Sequence record: NC_041974.1
Length of the DNA: 64,000 nucleotides
Direction: 5' to 3' (one strand)
Position 1 is the stretch's first letter, and every line of letters begins with the position of its first letter. The notes beneath the pieces were generated by a model. That model had not been told where the DNA came from and did no database searches. It saw only the letters and a list, made by a program, of their open reading frames with translations. Made by a program: the position numbers and the translations under genes. Below are positions 3,178-13,820 of this stretch, in pieces.

Positions 3178-4316
3178 TGGCACTGGATCAAGAGTATTAT
3201 GAAAAGGCATTGGGCATCCTACTGACCAAAGGTTTCTCTAACCAAGAAGCTGACCAGATCGCCACCACGCTTTCGGTATATCTCCCGATGCGTTTCATCA
3301 AAGCTGGTGTATGGGCACTCATGCCTTACGACCAGCATCCGGCTGATTCCCTGGCATTTAAACACATGCGGCTACTTGACCGTATCCCTGAGTTAAAGAA
3401 ACCAGTGATCCTTCAAATGCCGACTGACTTTACTTACACCACGTATGGTCAGGAGTATTGCCCTGGTGCTGACGCACCGACATACACCACAGGGCCCGAT
3501 GGTTATACACATCATCCGGTTGGTTGGGAAAGTGGGATTACTGGCATGCCAGGCGTAATGGGTCCGGCTGGGGATGACAATATTGAAGTCAGTGATCTGA
3601 CCTGTGATCGCCCCCAAAGCGATTTTAGACTATCGTTACCTGCCGAATCAATGGTTAGACAGTTTACCGTCGTCATGCGGGTTGGTGGTAAACCTATTAA
3701 AATGACGCTGGAAGAACTCATCCAGGAAATTGGAGGTTATGACAAACTTCCTGCTTCTGCACGTGCTGCGATTGATCGTGTTATGGAAGAGCATCGCAAT
3801 GCCCCTGTATCTACCGTATCTGTGCGTACACCCTTACCAGGCGGAGTATCTCAGGAGCAAGCTGACTATCTGAAACTGGGCGACCTCAGCGACATCGAAG
3901 GGATCAAACGGGCTTACCCGATCATCGACGAGAAAACAGCTGAACGGATGTCTAAGTTACATTGTCAGCTTAATCAGCATATCGCGCGGGTTCATCGTGA
4001 GCCGAGAGACGTTGAGGTATTTGATCTGCTTGCGGGCGATCACTCTCAGCGGATATTCCAATCTCGACATGCTAAACGTCAGTACCCAAACAGTTTGTTT
4101 GAGAAGTTCCTGCCGGATCAAGCAGACATCGGTGAACCCGAGGGCATGACTGTTAAAATCAAAACCCACAGTGTACGTCACTTCGGTCACGGTCTTGAAA
4201 TTAGCACGCCTTTGTTTGGCCAATCCCACAAAAACCCTACAGGCCCCCAAACCATGCCGGGGCTTGAGAAAGGCCGTGATGGCAAACGTAAACGTAACAA
4301 GAAGGGCAAACGATGA
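3177..4316 (+). CDS. Hypothetical protein with Lys/Arg-rich C-terminus
   Basis: 379-aa ORF, translationally coupled; ends GKRKRNKKGKR. Confidence 0.8.
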   Translation: MALDQEYYEKALGILLTKGFSNQEADQIATTLSVYLPMRFIKAGVWALMPYDQHPADSLAFKHMRLLDRIPELKKPVILQMPTDFTYTTYGQEYCPGADAPTYTTGPDGYTHHPVGWESGITGMPGVMGPAGDDNIEVSDLTCDRPQSDFRLSLPAESMVRQFTVVMRVGGKPIKMTLEELIQEIGGYDKLPASARAAIDRVMEEHRNAPVSTVSVRTPLPGGVSQEQADYLKLGDLSDIEGIKRAYPIIDEKTAERMSKLHCQLNQHIARVHREPRDVEVFDLLAGDHSQRIFQSRHAKRQYPNSLFEKFLPDQADIGEPEGMTVKIKTHSVRHFGHGLEISTPLFGQSHKNPTGPQTMPGLEKGRDGKRKRNKKGKR

Positions 4317-6187: not shown

Positions 6188-6640
6188 GTGAGTTCAATCA
6201 TGAAATACGTTTACGCTATTATCGCTGTTCTTGGTTTCTCTTTTGTGTCTGTTGCATTTGCTGCAGATCAAACCAAAGTGGTGAAAGGCTGGTACGCCGA
6301 ATACAACACGGCTTCGGTCCTGTATTCTGCTGGGCCAAAGAAAGGACAAGAATTGACCATGGAATGTGTATTAGGTGGTTGGACGTTTGCGTATGCAGAC
6401 AAGATGGGTGAGGAGATAAACTCGGTCGATGATGACATGACAATCCTGGTCGACGGTGCAGCATTTGCTGTGCCGAAGACGCAGGGTCAACGTGAGAAGT
6501 TATACGCCGCCATTCAGCATGCTAAGAGTGGCATTCAATACAAAACCCACGCCTATGGTGCGTCGGTAGTATTCCCAGTGGATGGCTTGGCCGAGATGTT
6601 TCGTGACCTGCCGTTTGAAGTCAGCCCGTGCATGAGCTAA
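6188..6640 (+). CDS. Secreted/periplasmic hypothetical protein
   Basis: Sec-type signal MKYVYAIIAVLGFSFVSVAFA|A (start may be ATG 6200). Confidence 0.75.
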   Translation: MSSIMKYVYAIIAVLGFSFVSVAFAADQTKVVKGWYAEYNTASVLYSAGPKKGQELTMECVLGGWTFAYADKMGEEINSVDDDMTILVDGAAFAVPKTQGQREKLYAAIQHAKSGIQYKTHAYGASVVFPVDGLAEMFRDLPFEVSPCMS

Positions 6641-6653
6641 AAGGAAAACAATT

Positions 6654-7364
6654 GTGATGACCCCTACCAAACAAATTAAACGCAGCTACCGTCTGATCAA
6701 AGTGACTGCCGATGTAACACGGGATAACTGGGTCGGGAAAGACATCGACTTCATTGTTCAGCCCAATAAAGACATGATCGATGACACCACACGTGGTGGA
6801 CCTAATCGCCTGCTCGCGACATACATCGTGCTGGGTAACCGTATTCCTGTAACCGTTAACAGCCATGCGACCATTACCCGGGAAGAAGGCTTGCAGGATC
6901 TGCAGGTTAGTATCGTCGATGGTCAGTCAAACTACATTGACATCAGTAATGTGCGTTACGTTGTGTCGTGTGAGTTAGAAGAGCACTTCACCTACGCCCC
7001 ACCAAAAAAGCGTTCGCTACTTGATCTTCTTGATCTCCTGGTTGGCGGGCCGATGGGTGACCCGGAGTGGATGTTCATTATTGATGAACAGCACAAGGTC
7101 TTTGTGGGTAAAGACGGCGATGTTAAAACGGACTATGTTTACTGTGGTTATCTGGTACAACAGGAAAGTGATCAGCCTGACCAATTACTAACGTTGGATT
7201 GGTTTGGTGTATTTGATGACAACTTTGGTAACGGGCACAAAATCGGTTTTGTCAGCGCCGAAGGTTACTTATTTGACAAACCCGAGACCCGGAAGAAAAC
7301 CTACGAAAAACTCACCGAGTTAGTTTACTTACTGCTGGCCAAAATTGAACCTGACTCCAAATAG
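6654..7364 (+). CDS. Hypothetical protein
   Basis: 236-aa ORF, RBS AAGGA. Confidence 0.75.
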   Translation: MMTPTKQIKRSYRLIKVTADVTRDNWVGKDIDFIVQPNKDMIDDTTRGGPNRLLATYIVLGNRIPVTVNSHATITREEGLQDLQVSIVDGQSNYIDISNVRYVVSCELEEHFTYAPPKKRSLLDLLDLLVGGPMGDPEWMFIIDEQHKVFVGKDGDVKTDYVYCGYLVQQESDQPDQLLTLDWFGVFDDNFGNGHKIGFVSAEGYLFDKPETRKKTYEKLTELVYLLLAKIEPDSK

Positions 7365-8982: not shown

Positions 8983-9537
8983 TTACTTCATACCGTCCAA
9001 CTGCTTTTGAAGTTCCTTTAACTGACGGCTTGCATCCGGCGTCTCGGCGTCATGGTCTCTGATCGCTTCAATAAACGACTTCCGTTTGCAATAAGGATAC
9101 TTCATCCATTTATCAAATGACAAACCAAATTTGCCCAAGATATCCGCACGCAGATATTCGAGCTCATACTTTCGATACCCAACTAACGCCAGCGAGTCTT
9201 CCTGCTCGACCTGTAAGATTAACGAGAGCGGCGAGGTTTCCACGTTATGGTCAATAATCCCAAACGTGTCATCGTAAAGCTCTGTTAATCGAATTAGTGG
9301 ATACTCCCAGTTCTCGGTAAGAAACGTGGGGTTTTCTAACGCGACATCCCAGGCATCGGACCGATCACTTTCGGACAGACCGAAATCCCAATGGATTAGA
9401 TGTCGGCTTGATCGAACGTCTGATTCAGTGTATTCGTCATTAGGGTAAAAAAAACCCGTGCTACGTTCAGCGGGGTGTACGCAGGGAAGGTATTGCTCAC
9501 CAGCGGCTGACGCGCCTGGCAGTTCGGGCATTTCCAA
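8983..9537 (-). CDS. Probable -1 frameshift extension of upstream CxxC chaperone (tail assembly chaperone 'T'-like / phiKZ gp76-like)
   Basis: Overlaps upstream ORF by 142 nt in the -1 frame; no SD before TTG 9537 or ATG 9531; slippery T8 in the overlap. Confidence 0.65.
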   Translation of the reverse strand: MEMPELPGASAAGEQYLPCVHPAERSTGFFYPNDEYTESDVRSSRHLIHWDFGLSESDRSDAWDVALENPTFLTENWEYPLIRLTELYDDTFGIIDHNVETSPLSLILQVEQEDSLALVGYRKYELEYLRADILGKFGLSFDKWMKYPYCKRKSFIEAIRDHDAETPDASRQLKELQKQLDGMK

Positions 9538-11024
9538 CGCGGCACCGCAACCACACCGACCGTTACCCGGTTGATGAACTTGTTCAGCTCTTCAAAGAAC
9601 GGTTTACGCATATCCGGGGTTGCACTGAATTGCTTCAGCAGTAATGCCACGTCATCGGCCGACTCAACATAGTTGCCGTCGTTGAACTCGATCTTGGTCA
9701 CCCAGTGGGCGTAACCGCGCATGGAGGACAGCGCTGCCTGTTTGTTGATGTGCTGCTCACGCTGCTCACGCGTCATGCTGTCGTTGAAGCTGTCGGTGAT
9801 CGCTTGTTGAATACCGTTGATCCAGGCATAACCCGCTGCATTCTTATCTTCGAGTGATGGCACCCGCAGATAGAACTTCACATCTTTCACAGTGATGACA
9901 TTGTCTTTCATCACTTCAAAGCCGGTCTGGTAGGCAATGACCTGCTCGACGGTACGGCCGCTGAAGTGAGACATGTGCGCACGCTGGGTTGGTGACAGAC
10001 GATTGTTGTCAATGATCGACAGACGAGAGACGTTAACTTTCGCTGCTTCAACATGCACACACTTCTTCGGATCGGCGGCACAGGCAGTGACCATGTGGTA
10101 GCCAGACTTAAAGCGTGCGCCCAGGTAGGCGTTAGCGATCAGATCAAGATCCTGCTCTTTGATTAACGGCAGCAGGGTTTTCTTATCGGAGACACCGATG
10201 CTGCTGTCAGTAACCATACCCAGCAGGAAGTCGGTCATGTGCTTACGTACCACGACATCCAGGTTGTTAAACACCAGACCGTTGGTACGACGACCGAGGA
10301 TCGCTTTCTCAGCCATGATGGCAGTTTGCATATCCACAAACTCATCATCGCCGGCAATCAGCAACGTAACCCAGATACCGGAATGTGGCAGCGGCAGATG
10401 GACATAGTCACCCATGTTCATTACACCACGTGCCCGCATCACCGCCTGTGGACCGGTCAGTAGTTTAGTGCCTTCGGTACTGCGCTTCACTGGCGGACGA
10501 GAGACACCCTGCACTTTGTTGTTGTCGAGCAGAACACCCTGCAGCCACTGTGCGCCATCTTGACGAATGGTCAGGTTCAGACCAGAACGGTACGACAGGT
10601 TGGTGATGGCGTTACTGGCCAGGGATAGCCAGATCATCGCTTTATCAGCACCGTACAGACTGACGATCTCTTTTAAGATCTTCTTGTCTTCGGTGTTGGT
10701 GTCGATCTCATTGATCAGCGCCGTCGCTGCATCGTAATCCTGATGCATAATAGACAGCACACCTTCCGTGCCGACATCCTCCATGGAATTCAGCTTTTCA
10801 ATGATCGGGTTCTGATAGAGCGGATCGAATGCCTGCTCAACGGCTTCAGCTTCGGGTGCTTCGGCATCGCCCTGCTGACCGGCTTCTGCTGGCTCGAGAT
10901 CGGTGCCAATAGTGCCAGTAGCCACCGGGGTAGCAGGACGGCCTGGATCAACTTCAGGGATACCAGAGTGGTTTTCTTCAACAGGCTCTTGCTGTGACAG
11001 AATGGATGGGTTATCACCGGACAT
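9396..11024 (-). CDS. Conserved phiKZ-like tail/baseplate assembly chaperone candidate (phiKZ gp77-like; T4 gp26-like CxxC C-terminus)
   Basis: 542 aa; acidic Pro/Ala N-terminus; C-terminal WKCPNCQARQ...ARVFF; syntenic position before vRNAP beta'. Confidence 0.6.
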   Translation of the reverse strand: MSGDNPSILSQQEPVEENHSGIPEVDPGRPATPVATGTIGTDLEPAEAGQQGDAEAPEAEAVEQAFDPLYQNPIIEKLNSMEDVGTEGVLSIMHQDYDAATALINEIDTNTEDKKILKEIVSLYGADKAMIWLSLASNAITNLSYRSGLNLTIRQDGAQWLQGVLLDNNKVQGVSRPPVKRSTEGTKLLTGPQAVMRARGVMNMGDYVHLPLPHSGIWVTLLIAGDDEFVDMQTAIMAEKAILGRRTNGLVFNNLDVVVRKHMTDFLLGMVTDSSIGVSDKKTLLPLIKEQDLDLIANAYLGARFKSGYHMVTACAADPKKCVHVEAAKVNVSRLSIIDNNRLSPTQRAHMSHFSGRTVEQVIAYQTGFEVMKDNVITVKDVKFYLRVPSLEDKNAAGYAWINGIQQAITDSFNDSMTREQREQHINKQAALSSMRGYAHWVTKIEFNDGNYVESADDVALLLKQFSATPDMRKPFFEELNKFINRVTVGVVAVPRWKCPNCQARQPLVSNTFPAYTPLNVARVFFTLMTNTLNQTFDQADI

Positions 11025-11041
11025 TATGCTTATCCTTACCT

Positions 11042-11509
11042 TTACTTTTTAGTGGGGTCGACCTGAACCGGGTCATTGAGTTTGCTTGCTGCGCCAGCGG
11101 CAACCGCGTTAGCATGGGCGCTGTCTGACATGGTCAGAATGGCAGCACCGTGACGCTGCATCGCATCCAGCAATTTACTTTGCAGGACGATGTATTGTTC
11201 GTGCACACTGAGGAAGTCAGCGATGGTGCTGTCATGCAAGGCATAACCGGTTTTGCCTTGATGCTGCTGCTTGATCATCGGCAGGGTTTCATCGATCTCT
11301 TTGACTACAGCCAGCGCCGCTTCGATGTGCGAGCTTAACGCAGAGGGGTTTGGCTGAAAGCGAATGATGTTGGTGTTGACGGCCATGAGACAAGTATTGC
11401 TCAGCTCATTGCGCAAATTAATCGTATAAGTTGCCGCAGAATCCAGGTACTCCCAGAACTGATCGGGCTGATGGACCTCTGGTGCGAGAGGCGGTTCATT
11501 GGTTGACAT
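11042..11509 (-). CDS. Conserved hypothetical helical protein (phiKZ gp78-like by synteny)
   Basis: 155 aa, RBS AAGGA on minus strand. Confidence 0.7.
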   Translation of the reverse strand: MSTNEPPLAPEVHQPDQFWEYLDSAATYTINLRNELSNTCLMAVNTNIIRFQPNPSALSSHIEAALAVVKEIDETLPMIKQQHQGKTGYALHDSTIADFLSVHEQYIVLQSKLLDAMQRHGAAILTMSDSAHANAVAAGAASKLNDPVQVDPTKK

Positions 11510-11601: not shown

Positions 11602-12513
11602 ATGAGTGATTTTACTGACTTAACGAAATTGAAGACCGAATTACCACAAAACATCCAAAAGATTGATGAGCAGGATGATGTGGGTGACTTCAGCGATCTT
11701 AACGACTACCTCATGACCATCATTCCGGATGAACGGCGTGAGCGCTTGATCGCGATCTGTCAAAACCTGAGCACCCTGCAGTATCATCAAGTCCAGCCCG
11801 ATGTGGATCGGTTACTGATGATGGCCAACGACGGTGAAGCGCCGTCGGTACTCGATGACCTGACCCGGTTGTTATTTGAACACGCTTATGACTTAACGAA
11901 AAACATGGGCTTTAACTGGGCTGATGAGATTGAGTTTGATCAATTATTCCTGCTCGGTGATGTAATCGAAGGCGCCATGTTGATTGATGGCATGGAAGAC
12001 TACGGCGACCTCTCAGCGATCCTGGATGGTGATGACTCAGTTGAAGAGAAGGTGGTGGATATCTGGGGCCTGGTGCTCGACAAAGACATGCACCATCTCT
12101 TTGAACAGATCCAGTCCATTGAACCGGCAGTGATCAGCGGGATCAAACAAGTCACGACCCGCCCGTATGCCGAAGACGATTATGCGGATGTCCAGCGTCC
12201 ACTTGAGTTCGTGGTTGAGCGGTTGGTGAAAGTTCGTGAGATGATGAAGACCGATGGCATTGCTTACCAGCATGTGGCCAAGGGTGGAGCATTAGGCGTT
12301 GAGCTCGATTCACTGATTACGCTCTACACCCCTGAGCTGAATGCCGTGACCGATCCGATCGAACTGACCGACCTGCTGGTTGCCTTTACCCTGATCAGCA
12401 ACACCCCAGATGGTTTGGTGAAATCCACCGCATCCCGGCTGGCAGAAAAATGGATTGATGATATCGAAGTCATCAATGTGGTAGGTAAACATATCGACAG
12501 GTATCCCGTGTGA
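11602..12513 (+). CDS. Acidic conserved hypothetical protein (phiKZ gp79-like by synteny)
   Basis: 303 aa, coupled (GTGA overlap) to RNAP subunit. Confidence 0.7.
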   Translation: MSDFTDLTKLKTELPQNIQKIDEQDDVGDFSDLNDYLMTIIPDERRERLIAICQNLSTLQYHQVQPDVDRLLMMANDGEAPSVLDDLTRLLFEHAYDLTKNMGFNWADEIEFDQLFLLGDVIEGAMLIDGMEDYGDLSAILDGDDSVEEKVVDIWGLVLDKDMHHLFEQIQSIEPAVISGIKQVTTRPYAEDDYADVQRPLEFVVERLVKVREMMKTDGIAYQHVAKGGALGVELDSLITLYTPELNAVTDPIELTDLLVAFTLISNTPDGLVKSTASRLAEKWIDDIEVINVVGKHIDRYPV

Positions 12514-13820
12514 ATATTCGCGACTATTTAATCATGGCCTTTCGGGCAGGGGCTTACAAGCAACGCCAGTGGGTGTTGAGTGTCATGAGTATCACCCAGA
12601 CCCCGGATGGTAAATCCGTAGCAGACAGTATGATCCCGTATCAGGCACACCGCATCAACATCGGCGCGACCCTCGATTGGGCTTACTGGGACGACTTCAA
12701 CAAAACCTTTGTGCCGATTGAGGGAGTGGATGTTAACTTCCCGTTGTTTCGACCCGAGGATCAATACACACTACAACCTGGGGATTTTGCCAATGTCACT
12801 GAAGAAGTTACTACTACTTTCGGCCGTATTCTGGCTAACCATTATTATTTTATCGATGTGGTCGGTGAACGTGTCCCATTTCAGAACGTAGAATTCAACC
12901 GTGGGATGTTGGAGAAGATCTACAAGGCCCGGGTATTAGAAGATGCCCAGGACTTGCGGCGCTCTGATCCGTTCTACCTGACCGTCGATGAATTCAAACG
13001 CTCCGTGGATAATGGCTTTGCCTTGGGTGGGTTGTCGAAACTCTGTGTACCGACTGCTTGTCCGGAAACCATGTATCCGCCGAAGTTCATCATCGAGATG
13101 CGTGACCGTCTGTTTGAAGAGCACAAGGATGAGCTCAACAACCCGGTGGTCATGGGGCGTATTCAGGATGAGCTGTTAAAGCATTATCGTGAGTTCCTGA
13201 TGTCCACCCCGTCAGCCAAGTTCTTTGTGATCAAGAAGACCATCGACCAGGCCTTCAACAACATGTTCCTGACCGGCGGTATTGCCGGGGCTTTTGGCGG
13301 TAACACGGTTATTACCAACTCGCTGTACGAAGGCTGGAACCTGAAGAACTTCCCGGCGTTAGTGAATGGCTCTATCGAAGCTTCCTTTGACCGCGGTGCG
13401 GCTACAGCCGACGGTGGTGAGAAAGTGAAGATGTTGATCCGTGCCACGCAGAACATCCGTATCACCGATGATGATTGCGGGACCCAGCTCGGGGTGCCGT
13501 GGGTGATTGAAGATGCCGGCAAGGCACGCTTCATTAACTCTTACATACTGGATAAAGGTGTGACGATTCTGTTAACCCCGGAGAACATTGATAAGTTCGT
13601 CGGTAAGCCGGTCATGACCCGATCACCCAGCTTCTGTAAGAAATCCCATGGCGACTCCTGTAAGTTCTGCGTCGGGGCACATAACGCCACCAACCCACGC
13701 GGGATGTCTTCTGGCACCTCGAAGATCGGTTCTACCCTGATGTTGCTCAGTATGAAGGCAATGCACAAGGGGTCAAAAATAGACTTAATTGAATATAATC
13801 TCGATGAAGTCTTCAATTGA
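12510..13820 (+). CDS. Virion RNA polymerase beta'-like subunit, C-terminal piece (phiKZ gp80-like)
   Basis: beta' motifs: bridge-helix-like EASFDRGAATADGG, DDCGT, RSPSFC...SCKFCVG Zn site, trigger-loop-like IGSTLMLLSMKAMH. Confidence 0.9.
   Translation: MNIRDYLIMAFRAGAYKQRQWVLSVMSITQTPDGKSVADSMIPYQAHRINIGATLDWAYWDDFNKTFVPIEGVDVNFPLFRPEDQYTLQPGDFANVTEEVTTTFGRILANHYYFIDVVGERVPFQNVEFNRGMLEKIYKARVLEDAQDLRRSDPFYLTVDEFKRSVDNGFALGGLSKLCVPTACPETMYPPKFIIEMRDRLFEEHKDELNNPVVMGRIQDELLKHYREFLMSTPSAKFFVIKKTIDQAFNNMFLTGGIAGAFGGNTVITNSLYEGWNLKNFPALVNGSIEASFDRGAATADGGEKVKMLIRATQNIRITDDDCGTQLGVPWVIEDAGKARFINSYILDKGVTILLTPENIDKFVGKPVMTRSPSFCKKSHGDSCKFCVGAHNATNPRGMSSGTSKIGSTLMLLSMKAMHKGSKIDLIEYNLDEVFN

Follow-up and report, generated by a model that had tools for sequence, protein, structure and literature searches.

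Do the overlapping genes gp272 and gp271 of Erwinia phage vB_EamM_Simmy50 (genus Agricanvirus; record NC_041974.1) represent two genes, or is the second one a continuation of the first, reached through a change of reading frame? Both are located on the minus strand of the 64,000-nucleotide stretch of DNA that was analyzed here as a whole (hereafter, the window), and GenBank annotates them as two overlapping genes encoding proteins of 542 amino acids (aa) and 182 aa, respectively. Judged by homology, the larger one is Chimalliviridae core gene cg18, a member of the phiKZ gp077 family, which all nucleus-forming jumbo phages have in common. We consider it very likely that recoding of one kind or the other, ribosomal or transcriptional, takes place at a run of thymines in cg18 and, on the basis of the sequence and conservation of that site, that it probably takes the form of a programmed -1 ribosomal frameshift. 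The features concerned are the following.

9396 to 11024, minus strand: frame-0 gene gp272 (542 aa), equivalent to cg18, identified as an open reading frame (ORF), from the GenBank annotation and by homology
9447 to 9453, minus strand: candidate slippery heptamer T TTT TTT, in X_XXY_YYZ phase with the 542-aa ORF and contained in the T8 run at 9447 to 9454
9452 to 9450 and 9449 to 9447, minus strand: the putative P-site codon TTT and A-site codon TTT, respectively, both parts of the heptamer
9399 to 9446, minus strand: frame-0 C-terminal tail, 16 codons, which would be present only in the product of nonshifting ribosomes and which is dual coding with frame -1
8983 to 9447, minus strand: predicted frame -1 extension, 154 codons plus stop, which would be read only after the shift and which encodes a conserved, mainly helical domain family
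8983 to 9531, minus strand: gp271 as annotated in GenBank, 182 aa from the ATG at 9531, a start that is not conserved

At the junction, the minus strand reads CGG GTT TTT TTT ACC when taken directly from the window sequence, with the T8 run occupying positions 9454 to 9447; past the second TTT, 16 sense codons follow in frame 0 before the TAA stop codon (9398 to 9396). The ORF running from 9537 down to 8983 lies exactly in the -1 frame, its first codon beyond the heptamer beginning at 9447, and upstream of the site it offers only two candidate start codons (TTG at 9537 and ATG at 9531), neither of which, as judged by eye, is preceded by a good Shine-Dalgarno (SD) sequence. A slip at the heptamer would join 526 frame-0 residues to 154 frame -1 residues in a product of approximately 680 aa. 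In all these respects (a T TTT TTT in phase shortly before the stop of the 542-aa gene, an exact -1 relation, two start candidates lacking a good SD sequence by eye and a slip product of about 680 aa), the window bears out an earlier note on this locus, which a model had made from the sequence alone and which had proposed a programmed -1 frameshift.

The strongest evidence for recoding was provided by a survey of 88 loci, which drew on 80 IMG/VR loci found by protein-alignment search, eight GenBank loci and the window and which corresponds to 61, 42 and 6 clusters at identities of at least 70%, 50% and 35%, respectively. Without exception, the -1 frame was open across the frame-0 stop, for 159 to 323 codons (median, 178.5), and the median open length of the +1 frame was 20.5 codons. 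An in-phase T_TTT_TTY heptamer was present in 80 of the 88 loci (T_TTT_TTT in 61 and T_TTT_TTC in 19), while the remaining eight carried T5 to T6 runs at the same place (G_TTT_TTY, CTT TTT ATT or GTT TTT AYC/TCC). Thus, when orthologues were aligned, as the earlier note had proposed, a conserved slippery run with a -1 overlap was what emerged. The use of codons at the site was strongly biased: all 80 canonical loci had TTT as the P-site codon, compared to 40% of the Phe codons elsewhere in the gene, and the base preceding that codon was a T in 80 of 88 loci, compared to 29% T at third positions elsewhere (within the 80 canonical loci, this T is present by definition of the heptamer), even though the preceding codon specifies 11 different amino acids among the canonical loci. 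Elsewhere in the cg18 genes, an in-phase T_TTT_TTY was found in none of 45,094 other codons and in none of 33 other Phe-Phe dipeptides, a rarity which suggests that accidental slip sites are avoided. The conservation of the slip site exceeds coding needs and is far beyond chance.

Conservation of the amino acid sequence encoded in the -1 frame followed the same boundary. The -1 pieces, 150 to 192 residues in length, formed a single family, with one profile round reaching all 88 of them and none of the shuffled controls, and homology began at residue 1 (median) and within five residues of the site in 71 of 88 cases. Numbered from the site, the conserved columns were Y1 (68%), P2 (81%), H16 (78%), F22 (92%), G23 (84%), Y58 (94%), E83 (98%) and P118 (85%). 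A profile search against 1.84 billion representative proteins yielded 432 clusters with the -1 domain; among the 150 matches listed, the proteins had been given lengths of 75 to 204 aa by gene callers (with one exception of 867 aa), an inconsistency that is to be expected if the -1 domain has no true start, and in none was the -1 domain fused in frame to a protein resembling gp77. The 867-aa exception (P0074), the only long protein among the listed matches, showed five short matches to profile positions 85 to 121 and is probably a repeat protein that matches spuriously, by composition.

Between the site and the frame-0 stop, both reading frames carry conserved sequence. In frame 0, the tail is a conserved amphipathic basic helix with hydrophobic residues at tail positions 2, 3, 7 and 10 (position 2 being Leu in 92% of cases) and Lys or Arg at positions 6, 9 and 13; the AlphaFold model places a helix at residues 521 to 539. 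Read in frame -1, this segment begins with Tyr (68%) and Pro (81%) and continues as a poorly conserved polar linker, and strongly conserved -1 columns resume around and beyond the frame-0 stop. Judging from these alignments, selection appears to act on both C termini, an argument for both products being made and used. The AlphaFold2 model of the -1 domain was all-helical but of low confidence (predicted local distance difference test [pLDDT] score, 52; predicted template modeling [pTM] score, 0.32), too poor for a fold search.

The geometry of the junction could be followed through individual relatives, being the same in AH06, SA002, pEa_SNUABM_37, Proteus phage 10, phiKZ, SPN3US, PhiPA3 and Goslar. 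Sixteen Agricanvirus records match the region at 97.7 to 100% nucleotide identity. The more distant AH06, a member of the same genus with approximately 80% nucleotide identity, has retained the T8 run and the frame-0 tail, and its -1 frame shows 80% amino acid identity across 153 residues from the run onward. The -1 pieces of SA002 (Salmonella), pEa_SNUABM_37 (Erwinia) and Proteus phage 10 are 40 to 49% identical, with homology starting exactly at the run and the frame-0 stop following 51 nucleotides later; in SA002 and pEa_SNUABM_37, a T7 run (GCT TTT TTT) amounts to exactly the heptamer. In phiKZ, SPN3US, PhiPA3 and Goslar, a Phe-Phe pair encoded by TTT TTT or TTT TTC is located 12 to 23 codons ahead of the stop, the -1 frame is open for 171 to 183 codons and the +1 frame is closed. 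Two distant loci of an AT-rich clade, which were reached via called proteins, share the site TAT TTT TTT ATC, and the GTG and ATG starts called there fall within a continuous -1 frame. In phiKZ and AH06, the -1 frame opens just upstream of the slip site, and in phiKZ and SA002, it does so only 12 nucleotides before the run. On this evidence, the site is conserved across the whole of the Chimalliviridae, including phiKZ, PhiPA3, relatives of 201phi2-1, SPN3US, Goslar and RAY, a much wider range than the earlier note had anticipated.

If the shift is ribosomal, most ribosomes would read GTT TTT TTT ACC in frame 0 and terminate after the 16-residue amphipathic basic helix, with the 542-aa form as their product. 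A minority of ribosomes, holding two tRNA-Phe molecules on T TTT TTT, would slip back by one base; on T TTT TTY, two tRNA-Phe can each re-pair after such a simultaneous slip, and in this case both would re-pair with TTT. The shifted ribosomes would then translate Tyr-Pro and the polar linker within the overlap, followed by the conserved helical domain of approximately 140 residues, such that the resulting form of about 680 aa would share its first 526 residues with the 542-aa form and differ in its C terminus. The long form would probably be a minor species made at a set ratio, because no RNA stimulator was detectable at the site, and the efficiency at such a stimulator-less site may be low or modest. 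Lack of a stimulator is no obstacle to shifting as such, since the G/GT frameshift of phage lambda works from its heptamer alone. The sequences directly show the site, its phase, its conservation in excess of coding needs, the conserved -1 frame lacking starts and the constraint on both frames; we infer the ribosomal location of the shift, its efficiency and the function of both forms.

Several observations weigh against this reading. Downstream RNA structure was not enriched: when the 70 nucleotides after the site were folded for 82 distinct loci and minimum free energy z-scores were compared with those of control windows, the medians were -0.47 and -0.28, respectively. The earlier note had likewise seen no clear downstream hairpin. 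An upstream SD-like element was not enriched either (6 of 82 loci versus a control mean of 4.9). The eight loci without a canonical heptamer would need slippage by one tRNA or imperfect re-pairing, and the conserved frame-0 Phe-Phe partly dictates the phase of the run, which by itself is compatible with transcriptional slippage as well. No trans-frame product was found in the main text and tables of the published proteomics, the supplementary tables lying outside the search. As to function, proteomics of early infection (PMC11849849, Table 1) detected, among other hypothetical proteins, Churi gp256, which is equivalent to phiKZ gp077; this would be unexpected if the role of the protein in assembly were purely late, and it could reflect early expression or protein brought in with the virion.

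The most serious competitor of ribosomal frameshifting, although in our estimation an unlikely one, is programmed transcriptional slippage, in which an RNA polymerase (RNAP), probably the phage's own multisubunit nonvirion RNAP, stutters on the T7 to T8 run and thereby alters the length of the run in the mRNA. Since it leads to the same protein products, this mechanism, already named as an alternative on T8 in the earlier note, was retained. It would account for the presence of a homopolymeric T run in all 88 loci (with T9 in four of them), including a T5 to T6 run even in the eight loci that lack the canonical heptamer, and for the failure of the structure and SD-like scans to find a stimulator of ribosomal shifting. 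However, the runs are short: T5 was found in 5 loci, T6 in 10 (together, 15 of 88), T7 in 38, T8 in 31 and T9 in 4, with none longer, whereas characterized bacterial RNAPs typically need a run of approximately nine or more for efficient slippage. Moreover, there is no sign that runs longer than the heptamer have been selected for, and the ribosomal X_XXY_YYZ rule is matched exactly in 80 of 88 loci. The run is followed by an A in 63 loci and by a C in the other 25. As far as the alignment can tell, the predominance of T7 and T8 (69 of 88 loci) matches a requirement for the heptamer better than it does selection for a long, slippage-prone run.

Far less probable is the arrangement implied by the annotation, i.e., two ordinary genes, of which the downstream one is translated from its own start (in Simmy50, ATG at 9531 or TTG at 9537), with the T run being a by-product of a conserved Phe-Phe. 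While GenBank annotates gp271 in this way and Simmy50 is among the few loci in which start codons precede the site, the -1 frame ahead of the site is devoid of ATG, GTG and TTG in 81 of the 88 loci (and of ATG in 86), and yet conservation of the -1 amino acid sequence begins at the site. Indeed, the first start downstream of the site is found at a median of 36 codons into the conserved -1 frame. Lack of the T run in orthologues, combined with a conserved start for the downstream ORF, was the pattern that the earlier note had named as speaking against a frameshift, and it is contradicted by these counts. Within the genus itself, AH06 lacks any ATG, GTG or TTG ahead of the site, its first start being a TTG 87 codons past it. 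Annotated lengths are inconsistent, too, and cut into the conserved domain: the downstream genes annotated in phiKZ, SPN3US, PhiPA3 and Goslar are truncated pieces of the -1 frame, with 80 aa annotated out of a 165-codon frame in the case of phiKZ 076.4, and the downstream gene of AH06, gp283, is a 68-aa fragment. (Both phiKZ 076.4 and AH06 gp283 are fragments of a -1 frame of approximately 170 codons, at positions 3625 to 4140 of the phiKZ locus and 6227 to 6733 of the AH06 locus.) Finally, conservation of Phe-Phe cannot explain the exclusive use of TTT in the P site or the preceding T across codons for 11 amino acids. Since the start is absent from AH06 and 81 of 88 loci have no upstream start at all, gp271 as annotated is most likely an annotation artifact that stands for the -1 extension.

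As for a sequencing artifact or gene decay (a miscounted homopolymer or a recently broken single gene), although sequencing errors classically occur in homopolymers and both ORFs would be united if the run had another length, we regard this as ruled out for practical purposes, since 88 loci, sequenced independently from isolates and metagenomes, share the same frame relation, the T5 to T9 length differences arise by substitution rather than by insertion or deletion, the frame-0 tail past the site has been conserved in its own right, as an amphipathic helix, and no in-frame fused version occurs among the matches listed from the profile search.

In the window, cg18 is accompanied by the following genes.

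11042 to 11509, minus strand: 155-aa upstream neighbor (phrog_10945), co-oriented with cg18; counterpart of phiKZ gp78 by position
11602 to 12513, plus strand: divergent gene encoding 303 aa (phrog_5038); counterpart of phiKZ gp79 by position
12510 to 13820, plus strand: virion RNAP (vRNAP) beta gene (phrog_2962), two genes away from cg18

The 542-aa protein matched 221 phage records by tblastn, with orthologues including PHIKZ077 of phiKZ (gp077; E value, 8e-36), PhiPA3 gp074, SPN3US gp39 and Goslar gp081. In the core-genome study of the family (PMC10299810 and its supplement), cg18 is listed as a "hypothetical protein" equivalent to RAY gp267, phiKZ gp077 and Goslar gp081, with no mention of either a frameshift or the downstream ORF. 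The gene order is conserved, with a vRNAP subunit gene (phiKZ gp80) and gp79 followed, in the opposite orientation, by gp78, gp77 and the small ORF, and the position of cg18 beside gp78, gp79 and the vRNAP gene gp80 is common to phiKZ, PhiPA3, SPN3US and Goslar. In each of the lineages examined, the 155-aa and 303-aa neighbors are found together with cg18 and the vRNAP subunit gene; phiKZ gp79 is described as a "structural head protein" in the phiKZ record. The pair in the window is thus located close to a virion RNAP gene, as the earlier note had pointed out, and its neighbors comprise the vRNAP beta subunit, gp79-like and gp78-like genes, a DNA polymerase and unknown proteins. According to annotation and PHROG matches in the window, no tube, sheath or tape-measure gene is present within approximately 20 kb of the pair. 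Scanned for promoters and terminators, the surroundings of the pair gave background-level results.

The predicted arrangement resembles several known systems. In lambda G/GT, as well as in P2 E/E+E' and Mu gp41/42, a -1 shift on a heptamer close to where the upstream ORF ends leads to a longer, minor protein that keeps the N-terminal part and gains a new C-terminal domain, as would be the case for cg18, and the lambda arrangement, too, is conserved across a large group of phages; it operates without an RNA stimulator, at a few percent. The two systems differ in heptamer (G_GGA_AAG in lambda versus T_TTT_TTY in cg18), in the size of the upstream protein (about 140 versus 542 aa) and in location, lambda G/GT being found between the tube and tape-measure genes and the cg18 pair between vRNAP-subunit genes and small unknown genes, and they share no sequence or fold similarity. 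Ribosomes on the 10A/10B gene of T7 shift by -1 a few codons ahead of its frame-0 stop, so that a longer C-terminal tail takes the place of a short one and the protein exists in a major and a minor form. The putative cg18 shift is similarly close to the frame-0 stop, but the T7 product is a capsid protein with a short extension, whereas cg18, from an unrelated family, would gain a whole conserved domain of approximately 140 residues. Like the proposed cg18 shift, the classical bacterial -1 shift of Escherichia coli dnaX takes place on an X_XXY_YYZ heptamer and sets the ratio of two forms (tau and gamma). The dnaX shift, however, yields a shortened protein and requires two stimulators, an SD-like element upstream and a hairpin downstream, whereas that of cg18 would extend the protein and neither stimulator was found.

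The earlier note had gone further and identified the pair as tail assembly chaperones of the G/GT type. Of this proposal, the geometry stands at the level of sequence, with two predicted products sharing an N terminus and diverging through a -1 relation; the assignment itself does not, given the results on homology, synteny and size. Neither ORF had a Pfam or PHROG match to tail assembly chaperones, Foldseek matches bearing that name had E values of 1.3 to 2.8 and probabilities of at most 0.16, the pair neighbors vRNAP-subunit and other genes instead of lying between tube and tape-measure genes, and the upstream protein is, at 542 aa, much larger than the usual 140 or so. By analogy, the cg18 pair may nevertheless work like G/GT, in that two forms of an assembly factor would be made in a fixed ratio.

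What such a factor might be is hinted at by predicted structures. Pfam, NCBIfam and PHROGs returned nothing informative for either ORF; the PHROG "baseplate hub" family phrog_150 matched only 2 of 18 cg18 members, with E values of 0.26 or worse. Searched by sequence against the PDB, the 542-aa protein gave only spurious matches to designed repeats and the -1 piece gave none, and by fold the frame-0 model had no match there (best E value, 0.68). That model (pTM, 0.71) has a folded core at approximately residues 155 to 542 and a predicted disordered region at residues 1 to 154. Against the predicted viral structures of BFVD, Foldseek found, besides orthologs, proteins named "Baseplate hub assembly protein, bacteriophage T4-like" and "baseplate hub subunit," with E values of 1.2e-6 to 1.2e-2, template modeling scores (by target) of 0.50 to 0.56 and root mean square deviations of 6.6 to 8.2 Å, in what is a comparison of predicted with predicted structures. 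The fold predicted for the cg18 core may resemble that predicted for T4-like hub proteins, while a significant sequence-profile match is absent and cg18 is about twice as long. The suggestion of the earlier note to compare the pair with T4 gp26 and gp51 was weakly supported at the level of predicted fold and not at that of sequence profiles. The label "baseplate protein," which annotators have given to the AH06 ortholog, is probably explained by the same predicted-fold match. In the Goslar virion structure paper, a term search for gp081 or gp81 gave no occurrences. These models point weakly to cg18 being a hub- or baseplate-type assembly factor, the C terminus of which would be switched by the shift.

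While -1 frameshifting on an X_XXY_YYZ heptamer is a textbook mechanism, its instance in cg18 appears to be undescribed. As the earlier note had supposed, we found no description of recoding in this gene in the searchable literature, which excludes most subscription-journal papers, so that an earlier mention is possible; several matches to the name gp77 concerned unrelated genes that follow other numbering schemes. In all nine annotated records that were read, the downstream ORF has been called with arbitrary starts or as fragments, and none of them marks a joined or slipped coding sequence for the pair. If the frameshift is real, a conserved domain would be added to the core proteome of the family, annotations would need correcting (cg18 homologs being present in 221 GenBank records), and the existence of two C-terminal variants of cg18 would be relevant to proteomics, assignment of cryo-electron microscopy density, knockdowns and transposon sequencing in these phages. 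It would also show, in a natural and clean case, how a U-rich shift site can persist across deep divergence without a stimulator, in an overlap arranged to specify a helix in one frame and a linker in the other. If, on the other hand, the phage's multisubunit RNAP were responsible, this would be the first programmed transcriptional slippage for that class of enzyme. The full combination is a tentative one, which we would not expect to hold in every part: that every nucleus-forming jumbo phage makes two forms of cg18 by recoding, that the hidden domain of approximately 150 residues is an unrecognized core component, and that the pair is a convergent, nonhomologous counterpart of G/GT that sets the ratio of a hub- or baseplate-type factor, or else that the recoding is performed by the phage multisubunit RNAP.

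Two further features of the 542-aa protein deserve mention. In an alignment of 18 homologs, four cysteines were nearly invariant (C315, C322, C499 and C502), laid out as a CxxC near the C terminus and a Cx6C pair approximately 180 residues earlier, which suggests a structural zinc site. Residues 1 to 154 (window positions 10563 to 11024, minus strand) are acidic, have pLDDT scores below 50 and vary greatly in length between lineages; the orthologs of SPN3US and phiEaH2 measure 656 and 686 aa, respectively, compared to 505 to 550 aa for other orthologs.

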